A DNA stretch of 63,958 bases, counting the filler, from Dimorphilus gyrociliatus (taxonomy: Eukaryota; Animalia; Annelida): NCBI GenBank assembly GCA_904063045.1. It is 4 parts of 4 records of this genome, joined end to end, with 100 filler letters (N's around TTAATTAATTAA, not from the genome) between each part and the next. Parts side by side here need not be neighbours in the genome. Positions count along the whole stretch, not along the records: positions 18,938 to 47,224 come from CAJFCJ010000182.1; 3 more parts are not named here. The stretch is one strand, 5' to 3'. Made by a program: the position numbers and the translations under genes. Under the pieces are notes generated by a model. That model was not told the origin of the DNA. It did no database searches and was given only the letters and a program-made list of their open reading frames with translations. This document shows, one piece after another, positions 19,566 through 45,800 of this stretch. How positions within the stretch are numbered: position 1 is the first letter of the stretch; every line of letters starts with the position of its first letter.

Positions 19566-22500
19566 AGATGTTGTTTGCCATCTTACTACCTCACCTGTAG
19601 GTAATTGACTACCATCTTGCCAAGTAAATTTACCATTGTTCTTTGCCAATCCTAATCGTGTTCTTTTTTCATTTCTATTTATAAATATTTTCTCAATTAA
19701 TTGAAACAATTAGTAGAAAAATTGTAAATAAAAATCTTCCTACTGAGTAAGAAAACCTTGGAAAAATACATTTAAAATTTCATCATATTTTGGCATTATC
19801 ATATAACCATCACCTGTCCATGGTATACCTTTACACTGTTCAATGGCTTTGTTGTAATGATAAGTTGTAGAGTAAGGGTAGGAAATACATTTTGTGCTGA
19901 AGAGAAAATATCCAGGAGGACAGGCTGAAGAAGAATTTTTTTAAGATTTCGAAAATTAATATTCAATTGCAAAATATATGACTACCTGAATATTTTTTAC
20001 CATGAACATATATTTTCAAGCAAGTAGGCTGATTTTTATTCTCAATGAAGATTGATAAGTATACAGTCAAAATTGGAGTGGATAAGTGAATTTCGCATGT
20101 CGACTGAAAAAAAGGAAAATGTCTTATAAAGAAAAATGAAAATAGTGGACATATACTACTTACATTTGAAATTATGATATCAATTCCTTGAGTATATGTA
20201 TACCACTGTACACTATCAAGTGAGTATTTTATTGTTAAATCCAAGTTCTTTGTTGTATTGGAAAGAATAGTAAATCCAGTAACAGTATATACTTTTTTGA
20301 AATTTAAACTTAGATTAAATAATTGTTAAAACTGGTTGTCACATGCTAAATTTGAATTTTTGTCAATTGGTCCCCAAGAGAAAGAATTTCCAATTGTATC
20401 TTCATCAACAATAATCTTTTCCTTAAAATTTTCACTATTCTCAACAGCATTTTGTTCTAAAGAATTAAAAAGAAAACCAGTTTTTGTGAAAAGAAAAAAA
20501 ATTTAAATATAGAAAATTTTTTTGTACGTTTTATGCAACCAATAATTTCTAAACGTATGCCTCTCCCTCCTACAAAGCTTTTGGATGAAAATCTGATAAA
20601 TCTTAACTCAAGAGTTTCATTAAAAAGTATTAAATTTTTCATATTTGTAATCCATCTAGGATGTTTTCTTACAGATAGTTTCTGTGAGGACAGATCAATT
20701 TTTTTATGTATTATACATAAGTTAGTTTTTATTTTGTCATAGATTTCACATTATAAACTCTATTTTTTTTACCTCATCATGAAACTTCCATCCATGAATT
20801 CTATGCAATGAATATTCTACTTTAAATTCATAAATGTAATAGTTCTGATTTTTACACCTTTGTGCAATAAAACCAGTCACATAGTAAACATGACCTAAAT
20901 CTAATTGTATGTATTTATCAGAATTTGCTGCCCAACAGGTGTCGCTATTTAATCTAATGTTAATAGACGGATAATTATCCATAGAAGCTTGTGCAATGAT
21001 TTGAGAAGCATGTATTTGATCCAGTTTCTCGAGTCCCAAAGGATGGTTGCATTGCGGAGTATTCATTGGCCATTGCTCTTCTCCAATATATCTTCCATAC
21101 AACTGAATATTTAAAATTTGATATGTCTTATATTCAGTTGGATTGAATCTAAACCCCTTACAAACAACATTAGGGGGTAATACATGATTGTTGAAATAAT
21201 CTCCACCATCTTGTATAAAATATGGCTGTTGTCATAGGAACATTGAATGAAATATATTACAGTATATGATATTCGTACGGAAAATTTTGTGCTGGTTTTA
21301 CTAAAAGTGATTAGTTTCTATTGTTTCTTCAATCAATAGATGGAATATTATATCATCTTTTAGTAAAATTAGCATAACATCTTCTTCAATATGTATTGAA
21401 TATCTTACAATAAAATCTCCATCCTTATCATTTATTGGTAGCCAATGGTGATAGATAGATCTTCTATAGAAAACATGAGCTCTAATAGTGTAATAGGAAG
21501 AAGTCAATTGGGCAGATGTAGTAAAGGAAGTCAATAAAACTAATCTTTCAAAATCAACTTGTAGATAGCATTCAACAGTTTTAGCACACCTGACACCACT
21601 CTGTGGAGAATCAACATAACCTAGACGATATTGCTTATTTGTGTCAGGGTAGTTGAGATTATCATAGTGTACAGTAACATTAAAATCTTCTTCTTGTTCA
21701 TAATTTCCTTCTGGCAATAGTTTATAGCTCTTTCTATCAAAGCAAAAATACTCGTAATAATGATGGTTTGATGTTAAAAATTTGTCTTCATTGTAATTTT
21801 ACTGATGAACTATTTGAATTGTAAATATTACATTCTGTTCTAAAATGCACTCTATAAAATGAATATGTAAATTAGTGTATGCAAATAGTAAATTTATAAT
21901 TTACGTACTTGTGTAGCCAACTGACTGATTTGCACATCTTGTGAGAGAGACAATAGTTTAGGCATATTGCTATATTAGTTATATCAATAGATTCTATTTT
22001 AAATTGATCGTGTAATCTGTATGATGGTCTTAGTGACCATACAGGTTGACATTCTTTCTTCCTCATTATAATCGCTTAAGTCATCTGGCACTGTTGAAAT
22101 TAAGAAGAAATATTACATTTGTTTACTTTTCCGTTAATGCATGCATAAGTAGAATTTATTTTTTTTTGAAAAATGCATTTTATCGAAAGATACGTCTTTT
22201 TTCAAAAAATTTCTAAAAATGAAATTTCATTGATTGTTTACCTTTGGGAAAACAATTTTTTCTCATTAACAAGTTCTTAATAAATTGAAAATAATTTTTT
22301 TCGAAAATATTGCATTTTTAAAAAAATGAAATTTTTAATAAAATACTAACAGTTTGCCTTTGTCTCACACATTGCGTAGGCATGAACAGTACATTTAATT
22401 TTAAATAAATAATTTTTTACATGAATGCATGAATGGTAATAATCAGGACTGTAGTCAGCGTGAAATTTTAAATAGTTTGTTACTGGTGTTCCATCCAACC

Positions 22501-25500
22501 AAACATATTTACCCAAAGTTGTTTGCTTAGCTCTGATAAAAATACCATAAGTTGTATCTCTAATTACATTCAAATGTCTTTTATTAATTTTAATGAAATA
22601 TATTTTATTTTACAATTTTGTTTACCTAAAGTTGAAAAATCTTTGAACAAAATCAGTTTCAAGTGTATTTTTTGGCATTACTAGATAACCTTGACCTTTC
22701 CAGCTAAATCCTGATTGACAAAATTTCGCGCTACTCTCAAAATTGCCTGGTGTTTCAGAGATCATATAGCACTTGTCCAAATGCCTCACTGAACCTGGAG
22801 GACATATTGGTGCTTTTTCACCATATAATTCAAATCTGACACATTGTTTTGGTCCATTTATAAAATCAAGACGAATATATCTAAAGCGTAAAGCTGGTGA
22901 TGCAGCAAGAGTTGTATGATTAACTTCAAAGTCACATTCTAATTCCTAAAATCAAAGAGAAAAAAATTTAAATATATTGACACCAGTTTTCATAATGATG
23001 TAATATCTTATTCTTACTTGATCAACTTTGATCACATTTGTTGCATTGTATTGTGACCCAGATAGAAAAATATTCTCACAGATATCTCTTAAAATATTAT
23101 CTTTATAGTAAATAAATATCCTCTCTATATAGTGAATTAAGCCTAGATCAACTGACCACCAGGCATCTATTTCACTTGGTCTCTTACACCAGAATGAATG
23201 TTTAGTATTTAATGCCATTTTTGGTGAATTTATAGGCTTATTTTCAGAGGATGCAGCGGCAATTTTGGGAAATTTATCAGTAACATTCAGTTGAGGATAT
23301 TTTACTGGGTAGCCATACAATTCCATACCGAAAAATGTTCCACCGCTTGATTTAATGTTAAAAAATCTAAGATAATGACCAACTATTGGTTGTTTGAATT
23401 CAACAATTGTAGGAGTATTTAAAAATTGCGCATTGTATTGTCTAGTTGCACCACTTTCCGTTTTGTCAATAGACCAATCCAAAAGATTATCAGAGTACTT
23501 GACACTAAAACTTTTGATGTAAAAATTATTTGAACAGCTACCTTCTATTAAAGATTTTATTGTTTCATATCGAATGCCAAGGTCAAGTTGGAAAAATGTT
23601 TCAACCAAATAATATCCTCCCGATATCAAATAGGAATTACAGCCTAATCGAATTTCATGAATTCCATTAGTAGGATTCGTTTTAACTCCACTAATCATTT
23701 GAGAATGTAAGATATAAAGATTTTCCAAACCAAGAGGTTTAATATAATTCTTAGTGACATTCACACTACAACCATAAACTTCCAATCGAACTCCAGCTTC
23801 TTCTGTTCCTGATGCTGGAGTGAATTTAAGATATTGACCAATTAAAGGTGTATAGAATGAATTATGGGCAAGTGACAGATGATTAAAATTTCCATAAAAT
23901 TTCTAAAAATAGATCAAATAAATTGGAACTAAGGCCTATAACTTTAAAAAGTGTTTTAAATTACCATTACATGTACGAAAGGGATCCAAAATTTATTGGA
24001 GACCTAAAAATTCTGATTTTCAACCTTGGGTTCTTTTCTACTTTAAGGGAAAAATAGCAATATCTCATTTTATATTACAAGGAACAGGAATGCCAAATGA
24101 TGAAGGATATATTAAATCTTTTTCAATACATTCATCTTTAGATAATGAAGATTATAAAGATGTTGTTTGGGATTATGACAATACATATGTGTTTCAAGGA
24201 CTATTTGATAATACTTATGCAAGATTATATAGGTTTCAAACAGTTCTTAAGACACAATATTTAAAATTCAACCTGACTAGCAAAGGGTCATATTTTGCTA
24301 TGCAAATTGAATTATATGGTTGTGTAGAATTTATTCCTGATTGTTTCTCTTTACCAACAACATCAAACTTTCAAGTTAAAGGAGCTGATAAACCTGTAAA
24401 ATTGAAATGTCTTGGAGATTGGACTGTACTAGGTCAGAATCTAGATAAGGCTGAGTCATGGTCCAGAGGTTGGTTGGACTATAAAAATGGATTTGAAAGT
24501 GAAAAAATATTCTGGGCTGGTAATCAGTTAGCAACTTANNNNNNNNNNNNNNNNNNNNNNNNNNNNNNNNNNNNNNNNNNNNNNNNNNNNNNNNNNNNNN
24601 NNNNNNNNNNNNNNNNNNNNNNNNNNNNNNNNNNNNNNNNNNNNNNNNNNNNNNNNNNNNNNNNNNNNNNNNNNNNNNNNNNNNNNNNNNNNNNNNNNNN
24701 NNNNNNNNNNNNNNNNNNNNNNNNNNNNNNNNNNNNNNNNNNNNNNNNNNNNNNNNNNNNNNNNNNNNNNNNNNNNNNNNNNNNNNNNNNNNNNNNNNNN
24801 NNNNNNNNNNNNNNNNNNNNNNNNNNNNNNNNNNNNNNNNNNNNNNNNNNNNNNNNNNNNNNNNNNNNNNNNNNNNNNNNNNNNNNNNNNNNNNNNNNNN
24901 NNNNNNNNNNNNNNNNNNNNNNNNNNNNNNNNNNNNNNNNNNNNNNNNNNNNNNNNNNNNNNNNNNNNNNNNNNNNNNNNNNNNNNNNNNNNNNNNNNNN
25001 NNNNNNNNNNNNNNNNNNNNNNNNNNNNNNNNNNNNNNNNNNNNNNNNNNNNNNNNNNNNNNNNNNNNNNNNNNNNNNNNNNNNNNNNNNNNNNNNNNNN
25101 NNNNNNNNNNNNNNNNNNNNNNNNNNNNNNNNNNNNNNNNNNNNNNNNNNNNNNNNNNNNNNNNNNNNNNNNNNNNNNNNNNNNNNNNNNNNNNNNNNNN
25201 NNNNNNNNNNNNNNNNNNNNNNNNNNNNNNNNNNNNNNNNNNNNNNNNNNNNNNNNNNNNNNNNNNNNNNNNNNNNNNNNNNNNNNNNNNNNNNNNNNNN
25301 NNNNNNNNNNNNNNNNNNNNNNNNNNNNNNNNNNNNNNNNNNNNNNNNNNNNNNNNNNNNNNNNAGGAAAAATAAAACTGGTATTTAATGTCCAAAAGGT
25401 AATTCGTAATTTCGTAGCTGAATGAAGGTTTAATAAGGTTATATTGATAGTTTGGTTATCTGGTTGGCTAGTTCTATACTGATCCAATGATTTCCAAACA

Positions 25501-27827
25501 TCGTTGTCTCTGGACCAGTCTATTCTCCATTCGGGAATTGGATATCTCGAAAAATGAATTTCGAATGAGACGATATGATATAATAAATTTAATTGAATAA
25601 AGGAAATAGATTCCACTCTATCATATGTGAAATTTGCCGTGTCATTATGAACGGTAACGACATTTCCATTCATTGGACAAGTCGTTAGTGTTGTGGCATT
25701 GTTTTCAAACTTGACTTTAGGGCAAGCAGCTGAGAAAAAAGTATTTTTTTAAAAATGAAAAAACTAACGTCTCTCGCTAAAAGTTACCGTTTAATTTTCC
25801 ATAAAATTCAAATACTGTACATCCAATATTCTCCCATGTGTCTGGATAAATACGAACATGTCTAGCAGTAATAGGCTGATCCAACAGAATTTGAATAGGA
25901 GTGAACGTATATCGTTCAATCGAAGCTGCAAAATTTATAATATCGCCACTGCTATTCTTCAATTTGCTGGACAACGTTGCATAATCGCAGCCAACCGCCA
26001 AATTGAATGATTTAATGTATCCTTCCGATTGGGGAATTGGCGCTAAAGATAATCCATAAAATTGAATTGTTAATGACCATGTTACACCAAACCAACTGGT
26101 TTTGGTTACGACATGGAAACAGGCGTGTTGAAAAGGAAATTCCCTTTGACGGCCCCTCAATCTTGCTAAATAGGGAGAATAATGGAAAGTAGAGAAATAT
26201 TTGATATTTTTTGCAGTCAATTGAACATCTTCTATTAAACCGGATTCCATTCCTAATGGAACTCCTTGTAAATCTGCAATGACGAGGAAAATTCCTTTTT
26301 TGAAATTGTCACAAAAAAAACAAATTATTATTTTTAACCTATAATTGAAATTTCATTGTCCAATCTGAAAGCTCGAATCTCTAACCGGATATCAGGTGAT
26401 GTTTGCCAACTATCGGGATTTATACGTAGACACTTGGCGATAATTGGATGTTTTAGGATGATAACTCGGTCAAAAGACCACAATTTATGACCTAACATTT
26501 TCTGTTGATAAAAAAAAATAAGAATTTCATTTTTTTTCTCTAAAGAAAAGAAAATATTGAAAAATTTTTGATTACAATGATTTTTTTTGTCTGTTTTTGA
26601 GTATACCAAGAAAAATCTAAGCAGTTTAAACTATATTGAAGGTGATGATGTACTATTGTATGTTTAAAATATAGTTCTCCTCCTAAAATATGATAGCCAA
26701 TTATCTTGTAAAGATTTATCAGATCTATTTGTAGCCATTGGTATTTATTTGAGAATTCTAGTCGAAATGTTCCAAACGAATCTTCCGTTTTAAAATTTTT
26801 ATATCTAGCGTCTTCAGGTCTGGAAAAAGTTGCTTTGGATGAAGCTGTAAAACTGGATTCCGGAAGATTATCAATAATGTTCTCTGTATAATTCTTATCA
26901 TTTTCGCATTCCCATTGATAAATTCTGAAATATGAACTCTGCTTTAGAATGACGAAATCTTCGGCGTATACTTTAGTAGGATGAAGATAGCATTTTTCGT
27001 ATACTTTATCCCAAGAAATACTATAACAAAGTCCGTAAACTCCAGACAGACAAGCCTAAGAGGAAGAGCGATTGTAGCGATTTTTCTATTATTATTACTA
27101 AATATAGATACTTTAAGGCATTCGTCCTTTGGAATTGTCTTTAATACGTAATACCTATAATCTCTAAAGCCTTCCAAAACATGCCAATAAGGCCTACATT
27201 CAGTCGGGTCGACTAAGGAAAGGGAAGGATAATATATGTATATTTTTATACCAAAATTAAAAGTCAGTTACCAACTTTTTTTTACTTCACAAATATATCC
27301 AGAATTCAGATTCCAAGTATCTTCTTCGGCTATCCATAATCCATTACTAACGTCAATCGCAATAAAGTGTTTATCATTCGGTATCGGATTTTGAAATTGT
27401 TCGAAATTATGAAATGTGACAGGTGTATTATCATACCAGACGAAATCTGTTAAAAAATTGCCTGTTGTATTTATTCTCTTTAGGCCTAAATAGTAGAAAT
27501 CTTTCGCCGAATGTTGAAGATAGATCTGAATGAATGATAATTTCCTGGCAGATTCAATTTTAATTGGTGTTCCATTAACATTTTGACATAGAGATTCTAT
27601 AGTTGGAATTGAATTTGAGTAGTTATTAAATTTTCCAATACAACTATCAAGATATCTTAGCCATCCATAAGGACAGTTGTCTCCTAATGAAGTAAAAATT
27701 CATCCTACTTATTAATTTCCTTATATAAAATTCCAAAAAAAAAAAACACTCAACCTTTCACAAAAATAGATGATGTAAAAATTGTTAAAGTAGTAAGAAT
27801 GAGAAGATTTTCTGAGAGTATTATCAT
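19566..27827 (-). CDS. Multi-exon secreted mosaic protein: signal peptide, C-type lectin, PAN/apple, >=8 F5/8 type C (discoidin) domains, further CTL and PAN domains
   Basis: ATG at 27827 gives MIILSENLLILTTLTIFTSSIFVK. CTL: CPYGWLRYLDSC...YYLGL...FVWYDNTP. PAN: ECLKACLE..CYSISW...CYL. Repeated discoidin motifs (WLQIDL, QLDLG, LRINP..W...IRLE, RLEVYGC). Short GT-AG introns. Spans an 826-N gap, so continuity is inferred; the 3' end is disrupted. Confidence 0.75.
23930..24538 (+). CDS. Opposite-strand fragment: F5/8 type C domain followed by the start of a fibrinogen-related (FReD) domain
   Basis: YWRPKNSDFQPWVLFYF...LQGTG...YIKSFSI...MQIELYGC, then CLGDWTVLGQNLD....WSRGWLDYKNGF....FWAGN (FReD consensus GGWTVIQRR.DG..F.R.W..YK.GFG...FWLGN). 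Cut by the N gap. Confidence 0.8.
24539..25364. other. Scaffold gap (826 N)
   Basis: N run without the TTAA linker, i.e. an intra-scaffold gap in segment B. Confidence 0.98.
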
Positions 27828-30353: not shown

Positions 30354-33300
30354 ATGGCTGAAAAAGAATGTGATGCTGTAGATGATCAATGTGTAATTTG
30401 TTTGGAATTGAGGACTGTAAAGGATTCAATAGAATTCCCTTGTTGTCATACCTTCTGTCTATCTTGCATAAAGGAATTATCTAGAGATAATTGTCAATTT
30501 CCATGCCCAATTTGTAGGCAGGTTTGTCAAATTGAAAATGCAAGGATTCATTTATTTAAGAAGAATAATATAAACCAGGAAGAAAATAATGAAAAATATA
30601 TTAAAGATAAAGATTTATCGATCTATTCTGAAGAATTTGATTCGGTGTACAAATTAAAAGAATTTCAAGAAATTCAAAGGACTTGTGGCTCATTTGCATA
30701 TTCGCTAAGATTTCCAACAAAAGTAGAAAGTAAAAAACTAATAGAATTGTTGAGTGATTATAATGACATAGAGACAGTTTCTATTGTTAAAATGAAAAAT
30801 ACGGATGTTAATTTTGAATCTATCTGCAAAGTGCTTATTCAGTCATCTGACAATTTGAAATATATACAATTTCAAGAATGTATTATCAACAGTAATCAAT
30901 GCAAATATGTCAGACATTTGCTAGAAAATTGCTCCAAACTTATCAAAATCAATTTCAGTTGGAATAAAACTATGAAATACGGATTATTTGACATTTGTCA
31001 TGGACTTTCTAAATCGTTTAATAGTTTAAAATCTATTAATTTCAGTAATTGTAATTTAAATGAAGGTCAAGGTAACAAAATTGGAGAAATATTGAACAAT
31101 TGTCATAAAATTGAAATTATTAATTTAGCTGGTAATCCTAATATTAGACAAGGGTTTTTAGAGATTTGTAATGGATTATCTAAATCCAAAAATTCTTTAA
31201 AACATATAAATTTCAGTGGTTGCGAAATAACTGAAACTATTTGCAAAACTTTAAAACAATTGTTAAAGATTTGTACTAAAATTCAAAGTATCAATTTTAG
31301 TAGAAATACAAATATGGGAAATGGATTTATGGATATTTGTTTTGAAATTTTTCATTCATCAACTCTATTAACACATTTGGATATTAGTTGTTGTAATTTA
31401 GAGGCTGAACAATGTAAATATATTTGGTATATTCTACAAAATTCCTCTAAACATTTTCAATATTTAAATCTACAAGATAATCAATTTACTTGTCAAGTTG
31501 GAATATCAATATTTCAAAATATCATTGAACATTTTACTCAAATAACAATATTATGTTTATCTAAATGTTATTTTGATAAATCAATTGGTGATTTAATTGG
31601 TAAGGCAATTGGTTGTAATCCAAATCTTCGACAACTCAGGTTGAGTGATAATAATTTTGAATCTGCTGTTGGAAAATCAATATTTCAGAATATAACTGAA
31701 AATTGTACTCAATTAATAGAATTATGCTTTTCAAATTGTTCATTTAATGAAGATATTGGAGAAAGTGTTGCTCATGCGATTAGTTGTAATCCAAAACTTG
31801 AACGACTAAATATGAATGATAATAGTTTTGGTTCAACTGTTGGAAAATCAATATTTCAAAGTATAGCAGTGAATTGTTCTAAATTAACAGAGCTATGTTT
31901 ATCCAATTGTTCCTTTAACAGTGATATTGGTGACATAGTTGGTAAGGCAATTGGTTGTAATCCAAAACTTGAACATCTTAATTTGAACAATAATAATTTT
32001 GGTCCTACTGTTGGAAAATCAATATTTCAAAATATAACTGCAAATTGTACTCAATTAACAGAGCTATATTTATCAAATTGTTCTTTTAATGAAGATATTG
32101 ACAATATTATTGGTTCTGCTATTGGTTTGAATTCAAAACTTGAACGAATAAATTTGACTAACAATAATTTTGGTTCTGTTGATGGAAAATCAATATTTTT
32201 GAAGATAACTGAAAATTGTACTCAATTAACAGGGTTATATTTATCAAATTGTTCATTGAATGGAAGTGTTGGCAATGCTCTTGGTTCTGCTATAGGTTGT
32301 AATCCAAAACTTGAGCAGCTATATTTAAAAAACAATAATTTTGGTTCAACTGCTGGAAGATCAATATTTCAAAATATAATTAAAAATTCTTCTCAATTAA
32401 TAGAGCTATGTTTATCCAGCTGTTCTTTTAATGAAGATGTTGGTGATACAATTGGAAAGGCAATTGGGTCAAATCCAAAACTTAAACAACTAAACTTGGA
32501 TAAAAATAATTTTGGTTCTGAAGTTGGAAAATCAATATTTGAAAGTATAAAACAGTATTGTGGTCAATTAACAGAGATAACTCTATCAAATTGTTGTTTT
32601 AATGAAGATATTGGTAAATCAATTGGATATGCAATTGGTTGTAATCCAAATCTTCGACAACTCAGATTGAGTGATAATAATTTTGGACCTGCTGTTGGAA
32701 AATCAATATTTCAGAATATAACTGAAAATTGCACTCAATTAATAGAATTATACTTTTCAAATTGTTCATTTAATGAAGATATTGGAGAAAGTGTTGCTCA
32801 TGCGATTAGTTGTAATCCAAAACTTGAACGACTAAATATGAATGATAATAGTTTTGGTTCAACTGTTGGAAAATCAATATTTCAAAGTATAGCAGTGAAT
32901 TGTTCTAAATTAACAGAGCTATGTTTATCCAATTGTTCCTTTAACAGTGATATTGATGACGTAGTTGGTAAGGCAATTGGTTGTAATCCAAAACTTGAAA
33001 AACTTAACCTAAGCAATAATAATTTTGGTCCTACTGTTGGAAAATCAATATTTCAAAATATAACTGAAAATTGTACCCAATTAATAGAGTTAAACTTATC
33101 TAATTGTTCTTTTACTAAGAATATTGGAAATATACTTGGTTGTGCAATTGGCCGAAATAAAAAACTTGAATATTTAAACTTGAATGATAACTCTCTTGAT
33201 TCTACTGTTGGAAAATCAATATTTCAAAATATAACTGAAAATTGTACTCAATTAATAGAGTTATGTTTATCCAACTGTTCTTTCAATGAAGATATTGGCA

Positions 33301-36300
33301 ATTTTGTTTCAAAATCAATTGACTGTAACAGACAACTTAACATTTTAAATCTGCAAAATAATAATCTAGGAATTGAAAATGTTTCACAAATGTTGAAAAT
33401 TGTAATTGAACGTTTTTGCAAGTTAAATTGGATATGTTTATTTGAATTTAGCTATGAAATGAGTAATACTATTGGTTTGATAACTGATTTGAATCAAATA
33501 CGTTTCCCAGCTAAACACTTAGAATGGGAAAAGAATAGACATATTAATTTACCAGATAAAACACTCTCATTCATTTGCCCTTTGAAAGGCGATTTGAGAG
33601 AAGAAAATGAAAATCTTGAATTATTCGAAAAACTATTCAAACATTTCAAAACTAAAGGTAATTTTTATTTAAGTTGATTATCCTTTTTTTCTTTTTAAAA
33701 CTGTGTTTCCATTTTTTTTTACTTTTTACAGGTATGTCTTTTTTTGAAAATAAACCAATACATCAAAAGCTGTTGAAAGATAAAGGGACAACAATGGATA
33801 AGAATGAAATTACCATATGGTATGAATCATTTATAAGAGTTTATATATTTTTAAAAGTAACTGATAGAGTTGTAAAGACAAATATTGGTATAATTATTGT
33901 ATTAATGGAGAATTCAATATCTAAAGATACACTTATCTGTGTTGATTATCATAGAGATTCTATAATCTATCATACAATGTTGAAAAGTGGAAAAAAAATT
34001 GGCCAATTGATCTTTCCACAATCCAACAATAAATCAAATATTCATTATGATTTCAATAGAAAATTATTAATTGAAGATGGATCAATAACTTTGAATTTAT
34101 ATGCTAAGACTAGGGAAAGATTTTCATTAAGGAGATTAAAGGAAGAGATTCCATACAATAATCTTTTCCTTGGTTTAAAAGTACTGGAAAACTGTACAAA
34201 TTTAAATAAACTGCAATTATTTCTAACATCAAATATCCAATATATAAATTCTCAAACAAAAAATATTATATTTTTGAATAAATTAAAGAAAATTTCAAAA
34301 TTTAAAACTCAATTTCAATATTCAATTTGTTTTAATAACTCAAATACTTTAACTAACAAATTGAATGTAAAATTTGCTCTAGATGGTTTTGTTTTTACTG
34401 AAAATTTTGCAATCAATTCAATTGAATATCCAATTTATTTAAATTTAAATTATTATGGCGAAACAACACATATTTGTGATAGAATTGATGTTAGACCTAT
34501 TGAAAGATATAGGTCTAACAGGAAATTGTATGATACACATATCTACACAGGAGAAGAGTTCACTTTAAATATTGACAATGCAAAAATCTATTTTCCAGCT
34601 AATTGTTTTAAAGAAAATTTCATAATTGTTTCAATGAGATTAAATTTTAAATATTTAAAAAATGATTCAAATGAAAGATTCCAAAATTTCATATCTTGCC
34701 AACCAACATTAGAGAGATTTAATAAAAATAATCAACCACAATTAGAAATGTCAACAATTTTAAATTATGAATCTGAACAAGATTTCAAATCCAAAATTGG
34801 TGTGAAAAATGTAAAAGTCAACAATTTCTATCAAAATATTGTTCAAATGAATATAATTCAATTCTGTAATATTGGTATTATTGAAAAATTGGAAACTGGT
34901 AGTGAATATTGGATTTCTTATAGTATGAATATAGAAAATATTGGTAAATTCAATAATTTATTCATGCATTATCAAATAACTAGAAATTTAAAGGAAATAA
35001 AGGTAAAAATAGAAACATTAATTTAAATTTTTTTTTAAATTTTAGAAATTTTTTATTGCCTTTAAAAGAAAGGAAATGTAAAGGTACAAAATGGAGGATT
35101 TAAGATAAGGCATGCTAGAATATGTAATATCTCTGATACCACTTTACAGTGCCAATTGAAAAGTGGTGGAAAGATTCTTATATCTCTTGACAGTAACCTT
35201 GAAAGGCTTATCATCAAATTTGAAAATAGTAATTAATGTATAAAAAAAAATTCTTTACTTTTATTCAAATTCTCTTTATTTCTAGACCGAAACGCATTCT
35301 TGCATTTTAAATATCCAATAGAAAATGTAAAGACATTCCAAGCTGAAGTTATATTCTATATTCTTCATAAGGATAGAAAAAAACAATTTTGGAGTGACGA
35401 TTATATTTCCTATTCTGCTGAGGACAAAGAAGATTTTGTACCGAATCATGAAAATTTTATAGAATTTGTTGAAAAAAAAAGTTGGTACTTTATTCATTAT
35501 TTATATTGTTTGAATAACAAAAAAACCAAAATTTTACCAACCTTCAGAACAACTTGTTACTTTTCCATTTGAACCAGTTAGTGATGATCTAAGAAACAAT
35601 GAAAATTTAATTAAAAAAATTGAAACTGGAGTAAGTTAAAATGGTTTTTAAAAAGAAAATTTTTTTTGTCAAAATATTCTACGTATAATTTAGAAAAAAA
35701 ATTTTTTTTCTTTTCCAGGATCTATACGATACTAGAGGATTAACTAATGTTATCATTATAGTTATGACGAAGAATAGACACCTTGGAACGGAAATTGATG
35801 TGAAAAATCTTCGATCACTATTCACCAGTCTAAATTACAATATTGAAGAATGGAGGGATTGCAATAAAATGGAATTAGATAGAAATATTGAAAAGTGGAA
35901 GGGTCAAATGTTAATTAGTGGAAATGAAATTAAGTCATTAATTATATATGTATTAGCTCATGGCCTTAATGAAAGTTTTCAATTGATGACTTCTACTGAA
36001 ATTGATACTGGTTTAATGTCATATAGTGATTTGTTGGCAAAATTCGATGTAAATTATTTAAAGGGAAAACCAAAACTATTCTTTACACAATGTTGCAGAA
36101 GTAATTTAAAAACAAAAATATCAATTCTAAACACTTTTTTGGTTTTATAAAATACTCCTTTTCTTTCTCCTACCAGATCAATCTAACTCTACAACTACAA
36201 ATTTTATAACATTAAATTCAAGCTCAAAGAAATTAGCTGATATGTTTTGTCTACATTCAACAGTTGAAGGTGAAAGCTCTTGGAGAACAGAAAGAGGGAG

Positions 36301-36502
36301 TATTTTCATCAGGGGATTGATGTTTTCAATGTTATATTTACAGTATAGTCAACACAGACTTTTTAAAAATGTAGAAACTTATACGAGATATTTTATGGAT
36401 CAATCAACAGAAAATTTAACATATGAACAAATAGCGGAAGGAAGAAACACAAATAGTAAATCCTACTTTTTCTTCCCTTCAAACAGGGAACAGTATTACT
36501 AG
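30354..36502 (+). CDS. RING finger - RI-like LRR array - ZU5/UPA-like - caspase fusion protein (~1,930 aa, 6 exons)
   Basis: Exons inferred from GT-AG sites and frame continuity: 30354-33657, 33732-35002, 35046-35228, 35286-35630, 35719-36100, 36177-36502. C3HC4 RING CVIC...CCHTFC..C...CPIC; 57-aa LRR pair repeats; caspase p20 with VLAHG and KGKPKLFFTQCCR; p10 with ADMF..HST.EG..SWR...GSIFI. Two single-base A-run frameshifts (~35072, ~35522) must be corrected. Confidence 0.8.
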
Positions 36503-37469
36503 AATACTAATGTCAAGGTGACAAACATTTAAGAACAAGGCTCTGTTGTCTGTAATGCATAAAAAAAGATTTGTACACTTTAAAATAGTGACATTGATAC
36601 TTAAAAATTACAAATGATGGGGCATAAGAAAGAGTCTTTTTTGTAATTAGAATCGTAGACAGATGGAGCCACTATTGAATTGAAATTACAGCAAATATAA
36701 ATTGTAACTGTCTTTTTTCAAATTTTGAAATATGTTTATCGAATCAGTGTTTAACATCCTTTTTTGTTTTTTTATTATATAAATAAATTTGAAAAAGGTA
36801 AAAGTTTGATTTTAAAAAGAGACAAGATTATTAACATTATTGGCAATATTACAAATATGGATTTACCAATTAATTTATGCTTTGAACAATGTATGAATAT
36901 TAATGAATGTGTTAGCATTTCCTACTTGTTTACCAGTTTATTTTATTGCAATAATTTAACAATTTCACCAAATCAAAATACTCACAATATTTCAGGTTTG
37001 TTAACCCTTTATCAATCTATTAGTAGCCCCTCATAAAATGTATCAAAGGAACTCTCTCTTTTTTGTACTGTTTATTACAAGCATTAAATATGACAAGTTT
37101 GAAAATCTATAAATAGTTATATATGACCTTTTGACCTTTTTCATTCTTCTCCTGACATATTTCTATTGAATAGTGAAAGTTTAATATTCAAACGCCATAT
37201 TTGAAAAAAGTAAGAATGACAAAAAATTTAAACTTGCAGTTTAAGAATCATTCATATTTACCAAATGTATGTATGCTCTTTTACCTAAAGTTAAAGAAGA
37301 TCCATTTTGATTGACACTGGCAGGACATCTTTGATTTTTATTTCTTCTGCTGCAAATCCATACAGTTCTCTTCTTTGTTTTAAATTTTATATTAAAAGAA
37401 AAGCCATTATGCACTAGTAAATCCTTTTTGTCATGCCTCTTTGAACATTGATCTGGTATATTCCATACC

Positions 37470-38917: not shown

Positions 38918-41900
38918 ATGTCTGGTCATATGAGTATTTTTGCAGTATTTGTTATATTTATTAATAGTTCACCTGTATCATTGAAATTGTGTGGATTGTC
39001 TAAAGAACAATTAAACATAAAAGCAGAGAGGGAAAGTGATTATAAATTTAAAATTGATCCAATTGAAGAAACTGATTTATATATATATGGAAGATTGCAA
39101 ATATATATGAAGCAGTTGAACAAAACATTCTTTCTAGATGTAGTACAAGGGCACTCTCTCTACTTTTCCTTCAGTTTATTATGTCAAAAAATGGGCTATG
39201 ATAACTATCTTTCTATGTCCCAAAGATGTGAAAATGGTTCAAGTTAGTAATAAGATAAAATAAATAACAACAACAACAACAAACAACAACAAAGATGACA
39301 TTGAACAGAAAATGTTTAAATGAAGTAGTGAGACTCCATTGATAACATTTTCTGTAGTATACCCAAAAAAAATTAACTATGTGATTTGTATAGATGAATT
39401 AAAAGAGAATAAACAAAATTTTTTTTTTTCAGTAAAACCAAATTATTTTCTCAAGAGTGAAAGATTCAAATCATTCAAAGTGTAAATTGAAATTTGAAAC
39501 ATTCTTCAAATACAATTTAATCTTATTTGTTATATTTCAGTTTTAAGTATTTAGATATAAATCAAGTTACAGCAACTGAGTACTGTTTGAGATGTTTTAG
39601 GGCTAAAATACCACCATGTAAGAAAGATAATTTAAATACAGCTATTGTATATTAATTATAATCTATTTAAATAACTCAAACAGACTTTTTTGCTCAAAGA
39701 CAAAAGGGACGTTATAGAATTTTCGCTAGACTAAGAAGTCGTACATATCCTATACGTCTCACTGATAGATCAATAAATAAAGACATTTGTAAAACGGTTA
39801 ATATTATCCGACCTGACCCTGGAGATTTTAAGTTTGTCTTTGGGGTTGAAGAGCATATAATTGTATCGTTGAATAATAATTATGGAGAAGGAGAAGATGT
39901 TGAAAATGCAAAATTATTCAAGTTTTTATTAGTGAGAGAGATATATAAATCAAGCGATATGGTTTATTGTGAAAAGAGTGATATTAAGGAGTTTTCTATT
40001 CGAAAGAATGTAAAGGATAATACTTTAAAGTATTTTAATTATCAAATTAATGATAGAGTGTTCAAAATACCAACCATTGCATCAATTACATACGGAAATA
40101 TACCATTAGCTTTCAATTACAGTAAAACAGTAGTTGGGGTCACACACCCACGCACACGCTTTATATACTCTTCTTCTTCTTTATAAATAGAAAATTTCAA
40201 GGTTACCAACGTATTCCCAAACATCTGTTGGTCTATAGGAAAAGTTCCAATACCCAGCAAGAGATATATTCATGTCTCTCCTTTTTCCTGGAAGGTCAGT
40301 TGAACTTACTCAAATATATATATTGTGATTAATACACACCAATTTCCTTTCTCAGTATTGGGATTGCCATAACATTTACAATTCATATTTTGTCTCTAAT
40401 AAAGCAATCATGGTATCCAATTGTAAACAAACAAACAACATCTTTTCCATCGCCGATTGTCAGCTTGAAGTAGGTGCAAATAATTTTTATATAACAACAA
40501 TTGATTGTCATCAAGATGAAAAGTTGAATGGTTTGTATCATTCATTTGTTTATTCAATTGTATTTTCTTTAACGATAAATCAATTATGTTAAAATATCCA
40601 ATCAGATGGGCACATTGCCTTATATAATGGCAGAGAATTTTATCATTTGCACCCCTTTGCCCATCTCAATAGGAAGAAGAACTACTCTCAATTTACTGGA
40701 ATTATACTTATTCACCTAAATAGACAATGGTTTCAAATATGTATTAGCTCTCTTACTTTACAAACAACTCAGTCTATATGCCAAAAACTGGGCTTTAAAG
40801 GCGGTTATACACAAACAAAAGTCAAAGATATTAGTGAAAATCTTTCAGCCTATAATTCAATTGGAATTAAATGCAAAAATACGTCCACATTCCACAAAAA
40901 TTGTACAACTTCCTGCAGAGCTATGACATTTTCAAAAGCCTCTAATTTCAAACTAGCCCAGTAGAGAGATATTTTTCAATTTCTCTTTGAAATATTTAAC
41001 TGAATCATCTGTTTTGTTTATAGAGGCCTATATACGCTTACAAAGGGATTTAAGTCAATTATTACCTGTTCCAATGGAAGAATGCCAGGTAAAAAGAAAA
41101 AAAAAATTCCACAAAAATGAAGAGGCGTCTAACATTTTTGCAGAATGTCCACAAGAAAATGGATATCAATTTGACAATGTTTGCTATTACGTGTTCAATT
41201 CTGAAACATCTGTATCATTTTTCGAAGCTGAGAAAATTTGCCGCAGCAAACACCTAAATATGATTGATGTAACAAATTCAAAAGAAATATACTATTCAAA
41301 TTTATTATTGAACATTAAGAGAGATTTTGATAAGAATTTTTTGAACTACTTTACTGATGATTCAATAATAACAAGTAAATGATTATAGAATATAAATAAC
41401 ACAGAACAAAACACCAATATTGAAGTTTTATTCAATTTTTAGAAAATATTAATATTAATAACTCAAGAAATAAACTGGTTACCGTCACATCAAAATGTCA
41501 ATTATGGAGTTATGCATCTTCATTCATACTCAACAATAACAAGTTGGCAAATATTTTTTGTTCAATAAAAAAATTTCATATTTTTAATATTTAAAAAAAA
41601 AATAAAACAAAACAATTAGAGATTTTTGCAAACAGTATTACAGTGATTTTGAAAATGGAAAAACTGTTAGTTACAATATAAAAGACAGATACTTTTGCTA
41701 TTCTTCTAAATATGAGCCAAATTTAATCATACTTGAGGACAAACCTACCAAATATATAATTAAAGAATGGAATTGTAATGATAGAATTACTAGAGCTGTC
41801 ATTTGCACTTCTTCACAGTTGAATTTCAATGGAACGAGTCTTGTTTTTAAATCATTTAAATATCAAAATTGGGGTAAACTATTAAAAAAGTCAGTGGAAA

Positions 41901-44900
41901 ATGACTGCTTTGGAAAGACATTCTTTTGTCAACTTTCAAAAGTTTGTATTAGTATCTCTGATGTTTGTGATGGACAGTCTGATTGTGAATTTTCTGAAGA
42001 TGAATTAGATTGTCAACAGAGGAAATATTTCAAATGTAAGAATGGTTTTGAGATGGTTAGTCAGCAATCAGTTTGTAATTTTATTAAGGATTGTCAAGAT
42101 GGATCTGATGAAAGTTATTGTGGTAAAATGGAAATAAAAAACAAAGTATTTCACATATTTTACTAAATTATTGCAAAAATTCTAGAAAAAACTCTTTGCC
42201 CACATGAAAGGTAGGTAATATGGACTAGAGAGGGAAGAAGGGAGAAGAGGAGAGAAAAGATAAATATTTATGTTTTCAGCTGTTCAAATGGACAGTGTAT
42301 ATCTAAAGAGAAAATATGTGATAGTGAAAGACACTGCTTTGATGAAAGTGATGAATTATTCTGCTTTTTAAATGAGACCAGTACTTGAAATCTAGTATTA
42401 TTTTATCAATTTTATCTATCTTTCAAAACTGTTTTTGTAGTTTGTCGTGGAGAAAATCAGTTTAAATGTAGTCGAAAATGTGCACACAATTCTTTAAAAT
42501 GTGATTTCAAAGTTCATTGCTCAGATCATGTAGATGAAGACTCAGAATGCTATAAATTCGGTTCAACAGCTATCCAATCAGATTGTTTGAAGAATTTTCC
42601 GTATTTTAATCAGAAAAAATGTTATGTTGAATTTAATTCTATTGGAGAATTATTAACAAAAGTTCATTATCCATTCAACAATTTACAAAATTGTTCATAT
42701 CAACTTGAATGCAAAACTGGATATTACAAGTGCAGAGATACTTTCTATTGCGTATCAATTGAGCAGATTTGTGACAATATTCCACATTGTACATTGGGTG
42801 ATGATGAAATGAATTGTGGTTAGAGAAAGATTTATAACTATATAGGATGATGGACAAAACGTCCACTATTTCTCATTTCTACCCAAACCATAACCCAACA
42901 ATGGATAAAGTAATTTCTCAATTTTTGGTCCTTTCCTTCAGCTTTGCTTTAAGATTGAGTGTACTTAATGAAATTGTATTTTTCCTAACCCAAGAAAAGC
43001 CCCAAATCTAACCCTCAGTGGACGTTTTGTCTCGACTCCTACCTATCCATCTATCTATATATATATACATATACTACTTTACAGATAATTTCCGTCCAAA
43101 AGGTTATTTCAAATGCAAAAATGAGTTGTATTATATTAACATTAGCAACATCTGTGATGGAATTATAAATTGTTTGAATGGCAATGATGAATTATTTTGT
43201 AAAGAATCTTTAAAATGTCCTAAAATGTGTAATTGCCAATTAAAGTATTCAATCAATTGTTCATTTAATGATAAAGATGGAATTGATAATTTAAATATTC
43301 AAGTGTTTGGCCACAAAAGCCTTTATATTAAAAATGTGAAAAATGTTATTCTACCGGCAGATGGCGTAGTTAGTTTAACTGTAATTGAAATGAATAGAGG
43401 ATTAATCAATGATTTTGAACAAATGCTAATTTTTCCAAATGCTTTCTATATTGATTTAGCATATAACAAGATAAAAATGATAAAAATGTCACAGAAATCA
43501 ACTGCATTCCGCCTTCTGCAATATTTAAATCTTAAACATAATCCATTAAAAACTCTAAATGACAAGAATTTATATTTTCCAAATTTACTCTATTTAGACA
43601 TCTCCAACACTAGAATAAAAGTACTCAATGTCAATTTTTTCAATGCTTTCAATTCGCTGGAAATTTTTAAAATGTCTAATTGTAAAATAGACATTATTGG
43701 CTCAATGCCAAAATTAACATTGATGAACAAGTTGTACGAAATTCATTTAAATAATACTGAAATTTCACCAGAACTGATAACATTAGATTTTGTTTTTAAA
43801 ATTCAAAATGCTAAAAGAGTTTACAGTGAAATATTTAAATTATGTTGTTTGATGAAAGAAGTTGGTAAAGATTTAAAGATTTGCCTTCCAAAAAAAATTG
43901 GAATGAACTCTTGCGGAAATTTATTTCCAACAGCAATTATTAGGATATTGTTTTGGTGTTCTGCAACATTTTGCATTATTGGAAATGTATGCTCCATTTT
44001 CTTACATTGCAGAAAGAATTCAAAAGGAAAACAACTATTCTATATTTGTTTGTCATTTGGAGATTTATTTACTGGAGTGTACATCATATTTTTAGGAATT
44101 GCTGATTGGTTTTTTGGAAATATGTACTTGGAGAAAGATTTCTTTTGGAGAAACAGTATTTACTGCAAACTTTTGGGAATATTGATTATATTTTCAATAA
44201 TGTTTTCAACATCAAACCTCTTGATAATTGCAGTTGAAAGATATATTGTCATTCTTAATCCATTCACAACTTTTAGAATTAGGAGTAAATTTCTTGTTGT
44301 TTTGTCAGAAGCTATTTTCTGTATAGCAATAGCAATCTTACCAATCATTCTATTCAATGTAGTCACTTTTTGTCATCATCATCACCATTATCATTCTCTT
44401 CTTTTTTAAATAGGGCTATTTTGCAACTTCATCAATTTGTTACTCAATTCACATAAGAAGTTCAAAAGTTACTGGATGGCTTTACTCCTTTTTAGTTTTT
44501 GGAGTTTTAATGTCAATTGCTTGCAGTTTAAATGTAGCTATCTATACTTTTATTATAAAACTTATCCTGAGTTCAAAGAATCTTTTAAACGCTGATGCGT
44601 ATGAGAAACGCATTCGAAGTATATTCCAAAATATTTTACTTATAACTGTGACAAATATTCTTAGTTGGTTTCCAGTTGCAATTATGGGTTAGTTGCAAAA
44701 AATCATTTCTTTTGATATTCTATTTTTAGACAAATTTCACTCTCTCTTTCTCATTGAACTTTTTTCTTCTTTAGGTGTTTTATCTACAGTTTTGAAGATT
44801 ACAATCAGTAATAGTGCATTCATCACAATTATTGCAGTTTCTATACCTTTAAATCCATCTTTAAATCCTTTTATATTTTGCGTTGGTGAACTTGGAAGAT

Positions 44901-45329: not shown

Positions 45330-45800
45330 CAGTAGATTGTATATATATTAGGGTTACCCTGAAAGTTGTACCTGTTTGTGTCGTACAGCTAAAAAGAAAA
45401 AAATTACATAATTTGTTTAGTCTGATGGCGCCAGGTCTGGGCTGTAGGTTGGATGAGACAAGACTACCCATCCAGCTGTTCTAAGATATTGAGTAGTTTG
45501 TAAGCTTGTATGAGATCTTGTAATAAATGCACCTCTTTACAAGGCCTGATTTTATTTATTCTTTGTTTTAATCTCTTTAAAATGCTGATGTAAATCTCTG
45601 AATTCATTCTGACTTGCAAACTTAAAAATTCTAGGTGAATAAGCCCGTCCCTGTCCCAAAATACACATGCCATCATTTTGTCTGGAGACTTACCTGTCTT
45701 AACTTTTTTTGGTGGTAGAGAAAACTTTGTATGATACTCTAAAGAAGCTCTTTTAGTCAATGGTTCATGATAAAATACCAATGTTCCCAAAAAAGTTTTT
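45330..45800 (-). mobile_element. mariner (DD34D-type) transposase relic
   Basis: Reads FYHEPLTKRAS, PPKKVKT.KSPDKMMACVFWD..G, NSEIYISILKRL and GWVVLSHPTYSPDLAPSD. Confidence 0.9.

Follow-up and report, generated by a model that had tools for sequence, protein, structure and literature searches.

To our knowledge, every characterised signalling protein built on a ZU5-UPA pair (PIDD1, NLRP1, CARD8, UNC5 and ankyrin) carries a death-fold domain after the UPA. In PIDD1, NLRP1 and CARD8 this domain recruits a caspase by homotypic interactions, and both NLRP1 and CARD8 are activated by loss of their N-terminal fragment. RING E3 ligases are tied functionally to caspase control in the IAPs and physically to leucine-rich repeats (LRRs) in ligases such as LRSAM1; in these proteins the RING, which is C-terminal, and the caspase belong to different polypeptides. 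Here we describe a gene of the annelid Dimorphilus gyrociliatus (assembly GCA_904063045.1) in which a RING, LRRs, a ZU5/UPA-type middle region and a caspase follow one another in a single reading frame. It lies on the plus strand at 30354-36502 of a 63,958-nucleotide stretch of DNA, filler included (the window), in the piece that comes from CAJFCJ010000182.1. Three sets of published observations bear on it. The released C-terminal fragment is reported to self-associate via the UPA (PMC7794386). Fusions of TRADD-N to FIIND or ZU5-UPA have been described (PMC8195603). In amphioxus, shortcut gene models called “LRRs-caspase” and “TNFR-caspase” keep the pentapeptide of the active site intact, and their authors proposed that they tie sensing directly to cell death (Zhang et al. 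2008, PMC2575513).

The order of domains in the predicted protein is RING, LRR array, ZU5-UPA-like module, second ZU5, a stretch of about 190 residues and caspase. The best analogy is NLRP1/CARD8 or PIDD1 with a caspase in place of the death-fold domain. On balance, we favor the reading that this is a single intact gene for a 1906-residue cytosolic sensor-effector that would cleave itself and would be activated without an adaptor, though with only a modest preponderance of confidence. The features are as follows.

30354-36502, plus strand: whole gene model, seven exons, 1906 residues, ending in TAG; predicted from sequence
30354-33657, 33732-35002, 35069-35228, 35286-35480, 35548-35630, 35719-36100 and 36177-36502, plus strand: the seven predicted exons
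30390-30515 (residues 13-54), plus strand: C3HC4 RING finger with the canonical eight-ligand spacing, found by regular expression
30855-33419 (residues ~168-1022), plus strand: ribonuclease inhibitor (RI)-type LRR array of about 30 units, found by Pfam, Tandem Repeats Finder (TRF) and regular expression
33779-34516 (exon-2 residues ~16-261), plus strand: first ZU5-UPA-like (FIIND-like) module, by fold only, with the UPA-like half at ~112-260
34517-34873 (exon-2 residues ~262-380), plus strand: second ZU5, by fold, Pfam in homologues and motif
34862-34867, plus strand: candidate autoproteolysis site between F1479 and C1480 (Q-F-C), at the C-terminal end of the second ZU5
34868-35630, plus strand: about 190 residues between that site and the caspase, comprising the exon-2 tail and exons 3-5, with introns 35003-35068, 35229-35285 and 35481-35547
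35719-36100, plus strand: caspase p20, His1752 at 35959-35961 (LAHG), Cys1797 at 36094-36096 (QCCRN)
36177-36502, plus strand: caspase p10, SWR with Arg1835 at 36284-36286, and GSxFI

The caspase is spread over two exons. Pfam Peptidase_C14 matched the p20 exon at 1.5e-11 (profile positions 18-128) and the p10 exon at 1e-3 (positions 154-208). With phmmer, the best solved relative of p20 was caspase-3 (1.8e-6), with both the His and the Cys aligned. The p10 exon aligned weakly with the p12 of caspase-3, where “ADMF..STVEGESSWR..GSIFI” matched “ADFLYAYST..YYSWR..GSWFI.” The caspase named in the preliminary description of this stretch, with its AHG, QCCR and SWR motifs, is thus present. For the active site we considered the S1-pocket residues Arg179, Gln283 and Arg341 (caspase-1 numbering) and the dyad SHG ... 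QACxG. Gln1795 and Arg1835 of the S1 pocket are present and align to caspase-3, and the enzyme looks catalytically competent as judged by its sequence. The 20-residue intersubunit linker (within 36101-36240) contains no Asp, so the usual Asp-directed processing site is absent. None of the exons gave a Pfam match to Death, CARD or DED, and the place of a C-terminal death domain is taken by the caspase.

The gene model unites these exons with those upstream. Across seven exons the spliced open reading frame (ORF) runs for 1906 codons with zero internal stops, in DNA with a guanine-plus-cytosine (GC) content of 27%, and an AATAAA lies downstream at 36782. All six predicted introns are GT-AG and 57-88 nucleotides long, with GC of 0.12-0.24 versus 0.23-0.32 in the exons. 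Four of the six donors read GTAA[T/G]T; the donor at 35481, GTTGGT, is the least typical.

33658-33731, plus strand: intron 1, 74 nucleotides, AAG/GTAATT...TACAG/G
35003-35068, plus strand: intron 2, 66 nucleotides; exon 3 begins at 35069
35229-35285, plus strand: intron 3, GT-AG, in-frame join
35481-35547, plus strand: intron 4, 67 nucleotides, GT donor at 35481, CAG acceptor ending at 35547
35631-35718, plus strand: intron 5, GT-AG, in-frame join
36101-36176, plus strand: intron 6, GT-AG, in-frame join

Introns 1, 3, 5 and 6 had been proposed before, and all four hold up as GT-AG introns that join in frame. The preliminary description had also drawn a junction at 35003-35045, to be repaired by correcting a run of A's, and suspected a frameshift near 35522. 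Neither repair is needed: 35003-35045 breaks the frame whereas an acceptor at 35068 keeps it, and the second frameshift disappears with an overlooked 67-nucleotide GT-AG intron at 35481-35547. Exon 2 ends in phase 0 at 35002, and the only AG that keeps this phase after the stop at 35063-35065 is at 35067-35068; we therefore placed intron 2 at 35003-35068. Removal of intron 4 carries the reading from the “...FIEFVEKK” frame into the “QLVTFPFEPV...” frame. The ORF segments of relatives (described below) stop a few codons past a common F[IL][KE]F[CV] motif, which is where intron 4 starts, and this supports the intron at 35481-35547. One relative, P0001, holds LRR units and a ZU5-type middle inside one unbroken ORF, which supports the join across intron 1. 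Since the p20 exon has no in-frame start codon before beta-strand 1, it must be spliced to upstream exons. The match to the Pfam caspase profile, left off at position 128, is taken up again at 154 on the far side of intron 6. The locus looks like one intact protein-coding gene by these signals, and the earlier proposal of a RING, LRRs, a ZU5/UPA-type middle and a caspase in one gene is supported independently of any frameshift repair. ORF-based gene calling cuts this gene into five or more pieces, and no relative that we found carries an annotation.

An exhaustive phmmer search with exon 2 against 1.84 billion representatives returned only seven relatives (best 5.9e-14, ~26% identity), all of them ORF fragments in unannotated Logan assemblies. 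The ten-sequence family alignment adds two further paralogues from the relatives' contigs. Its members share “IYxGEExxLxxDNAxLxxPxxC,” “NLIxCxPxxxxF” and an invariant F-[S/C]-x-x-G. In L001/L002, L003/L004, L006 and L007 (minus strand), a Peptidase_C14 ORF lies about 0.7 kb downstream of the ZU5-type ORF and shares its strand, and distant homologues at four or more loci of a related organism preserve the order of ZU5, then caspase. Both catalytic residues, His and Cys, are retained in the four relatives, where the pentapeptides read ECCRS, QPCRN, QPCRK and NSCRS. The N-terminal part of P0001 has only a few LRRs. Elsewhere we searched with less return: a metagenome contig scan gave no match, and a profile search of 90% clusters gave P0004 alone, swamped by low-complexity words, with a single-sequence search there blank. 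Contigs from different samples were identical, so no ratio of nonsynonymous to synonymous substitutions (dN/dS) was obtainable.

At 229-6525 of contig L007, on the minus strand, there is a same-strand chain of ORFs that resembles a NACHT followed by a ZU5-type middle and a caspase. The chain opens with an 871-residue ORF whose Atlas features were NACHT-like (0.95, 202 common features, 10/10 best matches NACHT). By eye, this ORF has a Walker-B-like “ILFIDDFHD” and the NACHT-associated “FFDKKFQEYFASYF”; it gave no Pfam NACHT match and has no Walker A motif. This relative seems to carry a NACHT in front, as NLRP1 does, with a caspase replacing the CARD. Extra ZU5-type ORFs adjoin the ZU5-caspase genes in tandem at 510-4680 of L006 and head-to-head at 7304-8248 of L007, so that the family appears to sit in small clusters. 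Taken jointly with the single-gene, self-cleaving reading, and held with the same slight leaning in favor, the family would be small and fast-evolving, with a constant ZU5-caspase cassette joined to differing N-terminal sensor parts.

The stretch of the middle region that had been flagged as ZU5-like has the ZU5 fold, both in predicted structure and by Pfam in homologues. An AlphaFold model of exon-2 residues 250-423 (predicted local distance difference test, pLDDT, 75) gave structural matches that include the GAIN and Nup98 autoproteolytic domains. The ZU5 superfamily, in the definition of PMC3482391, consists of ZU5 along with these two kinds of autoproteolytic domain. Pfam ZU5 was matched directly in 2 of the 10 family members (best 9.5e-6; P0001 at 1.2e-3), and when the family profile was run against PDB sequences, the only ZU5 match was the ZO-1 ZU5, aligned up to its “DHF.” Neither exon-2 model had a Foldseek match in the PDB at E <= 0.001; the PDB matches of the 250-423 model with high probability and a template modeling (TM) score > 0.4 were ankyrin ZU5 domains only. 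We took the support for the ZU5 and UPA folds from the VIA-align and AlphaFold DB libraries. On the predicted structure, exon-2 residues ~262-380 are a ZU5 domain.

Upstream of this domain, a model of all of exon 2 (423 residues; pLDDT 73.5, predicted TM score 0.73) contains two more beta-sandwiches. Residues 16-261 matched SH3BP4 (1.7e-5), mouse NLRP1b (1.3e-4), the FIIND of human NLRP1 at 1070-1358 (3.1e-4), CARD8 (5e-4) and UNC5 (5.8e-4) in a Foldseek search of AlphaFold DB, along with “FIIND domain-containing protein” clusters (2.2e-5). Searching the ESM Atlas by shape with this module again brought up SH3BP4-type ZU5-UPA proteins. Given these significant fold matches, a UPA-like fold is present upstream of where it had been placed before. 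The earlier assignment of a UPA to the exon with “VQNGGFKI” is misplaced or, at the least, unproven: that exon has no Pfam match, and the UPA-like fold sits at exon-2 residues ~112-260 instead. The first module has no Pfam match either, and no F-S cleavage motif in it is conserved among the relatives. With hhalign we detected no internal duplication between the first module and the second ZU5 plus the part downstream of it.

The second ZU5 ends in a candidate autocleavage site. All ten members of the family, which are 20-27% identical, have an invariant Phe, Ser/Cys and +4 Gly in the motif [H/Q/S/K/N]-F-[S/C]-x-x-G. The residue at -2 varies (H, Q, S, K or N) and is Q in the window gene. In the alignment with the ZO-1 ZU5, the Phe-Cys site falls at “DHF.” Mutagenesis of CARD8, NLRP1, PIDD and Nup98 found the Phe at -1 and the Ser nucleophile at +1 to be essential and the -2 residue to be dispensable, and Nup98 H862Q was only slightly impaired (PMC3210808). 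The family motif, at the level of sequence, matches these experimentally defined needs of FIIND, PIDD and Nup98 autocleavage, which makes F1479-C1480 a candidate site. A second possible site, “RF-S” at exon-2 residues 130-131, was tried as the first cleavage site and rejected: it is not conserved in the relatives, and it is structurally misplaced, past the strand matched to the beginning of the NLRP1 UPA.

Between the Phe-Cys site and the caspase lie about 190 residues, which begin with predicted beta strands directly after the site. Pfam found nothing for this stretch in window exons 3-5 or in the corresponding ORFs of the relatives. For the homologous 168-residue ORF in L007, Atlas features gave weak beta-sandwich (discoidin-like) leads only (0.66). 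By its position after the second ZU5, this stretch could be a second UPA.

The other half of the protein, exon 1 (1101 residues), shows only the RING and the LRRs in Pfam, with no NACHT in the window gene. The C3HC4 RING that had been read here has exact ligand spacing: C-x2-C-x13-C-x-H-x2-C-x2-C-x13-C-x2-C at residues 13-54 falls within C-x2-C-x9-39-C-x1-3-H-x2-3-C-x2-C-x4-48-C-x2-C. Its Pfam scores, on the other side, are just below threshold, at 25.8 bits versus 27.3 for zf-RING_2 and 16.8 versus 21 for zf-C3HC4. A homologue search with the RING-linker region (residues 1-170) gave no match, and neither that search nor the relatives' contigs turned up a relative with a RING. The long RI-like LRR array was confirmed outright (LRR_1 3e-30, LRR_4 1e-28, LRR_6 5.5e-11). 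Its units alternate between 28 and 29 residues; 27 were matched by the expression LxxLxLxx[N/C]xL, the first four of them spaced 57 residues apart. At the DNA level, TRF found a 171-nucleotide period, equal to a 57-residue double unit, in 10.5 copies. Repeat copies at 31456-33335 are 70-77% identical and one pair 1026 nucleotides apart is 81-87% identical, which suggests recent turnover of LRR units. The sequence of that pair indicates a recent internal segmental duplication in the array.

By analogy with NLRP1/CARD8 and PIDD1, a mechanism can be drawn for such a protein. Its precedents are the self-processing of FIIND and PIDD, the UPA-driven self-association of the freed C-terminal fragment and the activation of NLRP1 and CARD8 on losing their N-terminal one. 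The second ZU5 would cleave itself between F1479 and C1480, and the two halves would stay bound non-covalently. The LRR part would sense a ligand or a perturbation and, until then, keep the C-terminal part inactive. Once the N-terminal piece was removed or released, the C-terminal fragment, made of the ~190 residues and the caspase, would self-associate, and the caspase would be activated through induced proximity without a death domain or CARD adaptor. The protein's own RING may drive removal of the N-terminal piece via ubiquitination and proteasomal degradation; in cis, it could act either as the trigger of this loss or as a limiter of protein level, as in the RINGs of IAPs. We infer both the skipping of the adaptor and the role of the RING in turnover. 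The most complete version, an adaptor-free inflammasome-like switch in which the ZU5 is cut, LRR engagement or damage leads the RING to ubiquitinate, the proteasome removes the N-terminal part and the cis-caspase oligomerizes, with a mobile cassette paired with RING-LRR here and with NACHT in a relative, is a tentative proposal that we consider unlikely to hold in all its parts.

The comparison with known proteins explains our choice of analogies. With NLRP1 and CARD8 the gene shares the order of parts (LRRs upstream of ZU5-UPA, as in NLRP1), the best fold match of the middle region, which is their FIIND, and an x-F-[S/C] at the ZU5 end with a variable -2 residue; the relative L007, which appears to have a NACHT in front, adds a further likeness to NLRP1. 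The gene differs in that the caspase itself follows rather than a CARD, there is no NACHT or PYD and there is an N-terminal RING, two ZU5-type modules are present instead of one, and the putative nucleophile is Cys instead of Ser. PIDD1 (LRR-ZU5-ZU5-UPA-death domain) resembles the gene in its N-terminal LRRs followed by more than one ZU5-type domain, in an HFS-like motif at the ZU5 end (HFS or HFC in 6/10 family members) and in an output through an initiator-type caspase. However, the window gene lacks a death domain, would not need RAIDD, has a RING, carries about 30 RI-type LRRs versus 7 and has one conserved cleavage-type site; sequence similarity to PIDD1 is undetectable, and the link is by fold and motif alone. 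The likening to a PIDDosome in the preliminary description is reasonable as regards domains, with LRRs followed by ZU5/UPA modules; the fold is matched equally or better by the FIIND of NLRP1 and CARD8. UNC5, ankyrins, MACC1 and SH3BP4 differ in ending in death domains, in being scaffolds or receptors with no protease and, for most, in not being self-cleaving.

As to novelty, neither a ZU5/FIIND-caspase nor a RING-LRR-caspase protein turned up in a non-exhaustive full-text literature search. The earlier statement that the architecture is undescribed needs to be qualified by the amphioxus “LRRs-caspase” models, the one precedent that we found. Those models share with the window gene a recognition-type domain fused straight to a caspase. 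They differ in that the searchable text and supplements of PMC2575513 report no ZU5/UPA or RING, and in belonging to another phylum.

Several findings weigh against the self-cleaving, adaptor-free reading. Every splice junction is a prediction from sequence, and two are weaker than the others: that with the acceptor AAAAG (35068) and that with the donor GTTGGT (35481). The RING is under the Pfam thresholds and was seen in none of the relatives found, and Pfam gives no ZU5, UPA or other match in window exons 2-5. The site has Q at -2 and Cys at +1 and is not the classical HFS or SFS, and with no domain match in the ~190 residues, a UPA-type oligomerizer beside the caspase is only putative. In the caspase, the equivalent of Arg179 is offset by one residue (NRHLGT versus SRSGT), which leaves substrate specificity uncertain. 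Together with the Asp-free linker, this shift suggests an initiator-like enzyme that would be activated by dimerization and not by linker cleavage. Some of these points fit a different use of the same gene, in which the ZU5/UPA parts stay uncleaved and serve, like those of ankyrin or UNC5, as rigid spacers or for interaction, an LRR ligand oligomerizes the whole protein and activates the caspase directly, and the RING is an IAP-like brake that holds protein levels down by self-ubiquitination. Self-cleavage is absent from many ZU5 domains, UNC5b carries a Leu in place of the Phe (PMC3210808), the window gene reads QFC and its first module has no conserved F-S, and a linker without Asp would suit activation by dimerization alone. 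What this alternative does not easily explain is an invariant Phe, Ser/Cys and Gly at ~25% identity, which is hard to account for without a chemical role. We regard it as rather unlikely.

Other explanations question the gene itself. There could be two or more adjacent genes or alternative transcripts, with a RING-LRR product ending at the stop at 33675 and a ZU5-caspase product starting from the ATG at 33734. An in-frame ATG two bases into exon 2, a stop 18 nucleotides into intron 1, a gene model predicted from sequence alone and the failure to find a relative bearing a RING all agree with this. Against these stand a gap of just 57 nucleotides, whose consensus donor, T-rich tract and CAG acceptor restore the frame, as well as P0001, whose LRR units share an ORF with the ZU5 middle, and we give separate products a low probability. 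Lower still, in our estimate, is the chance that this is a lineage-specific gene in decay or without function, or a product of faulty assembly, in which case the two frameshifts would be real and the caspase no longer made. The less typical splice signals at the two revised junctions and the very fast evolution of the family would suit decay, but both places have a frame-preserving GT-AG solution that yields 1906 codons without a stop, the catalytic and structural motifs are all intact and an intron position is common to the relatives. We thus return to a single intact gene for a self-cleaving sensor-effector as the reading that we favor.

The surrounding piece of the window (18938-47224) has a GC content of 25-31%. 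On the minus strand at 19963-26609 lies a multi-exon F5/8 type C (discoidin) gene with several domains (Pfam down to 7.5e-11), broken by an assembly gap of N's at roughly 24540-25360. On the plus strand, 41819-44409 holds LDLa repeats (6e-13), LRRs and a rhodopsin-type region of seven transmembrane helices (2.5e-9); this is probably a relaxin/LGR-type receptor gene. A mariner-type transposase fragment is found at 45464-45790 on the minus strand (Pfam Transposase_1, 3.3e-14). A ciliate genetic code was considered and ruled out, as zero TAA or TAG occurred in 5.7 kb of exons and the neighboring genes are of animal type. Synteny of the relative contig L001 with the window via a downstream G protein-coupled receptor was also ruled out, since the two receptors are unrelated. 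In a 2017 sequencing run (X1) labelled as a different organism, 73-76% of sampled 31-mers from window positions 33000-36600 were present, which means either that the run is from a close relative, diverged by ~1%, or that it is a spliced transcriptome. The other runs found with it were several DNA runs.

If expressed and processed, the protein would put the models of induced proximity and functional degradation to a natural test on a single chain, and its built-in RING would give a simple handle on how ubiquitination is coupled with caspase release. These questions are of interest to the fields of cell death and innate-immunity evolution. An expressed and processed protein of this kind would also show that a ZU5-UPA switch can act on an effector to which it is directly joined, and that the sensor-to-caspase shortcuts of invertebrates extend beyond the LRR-caspase models of amphioxus.

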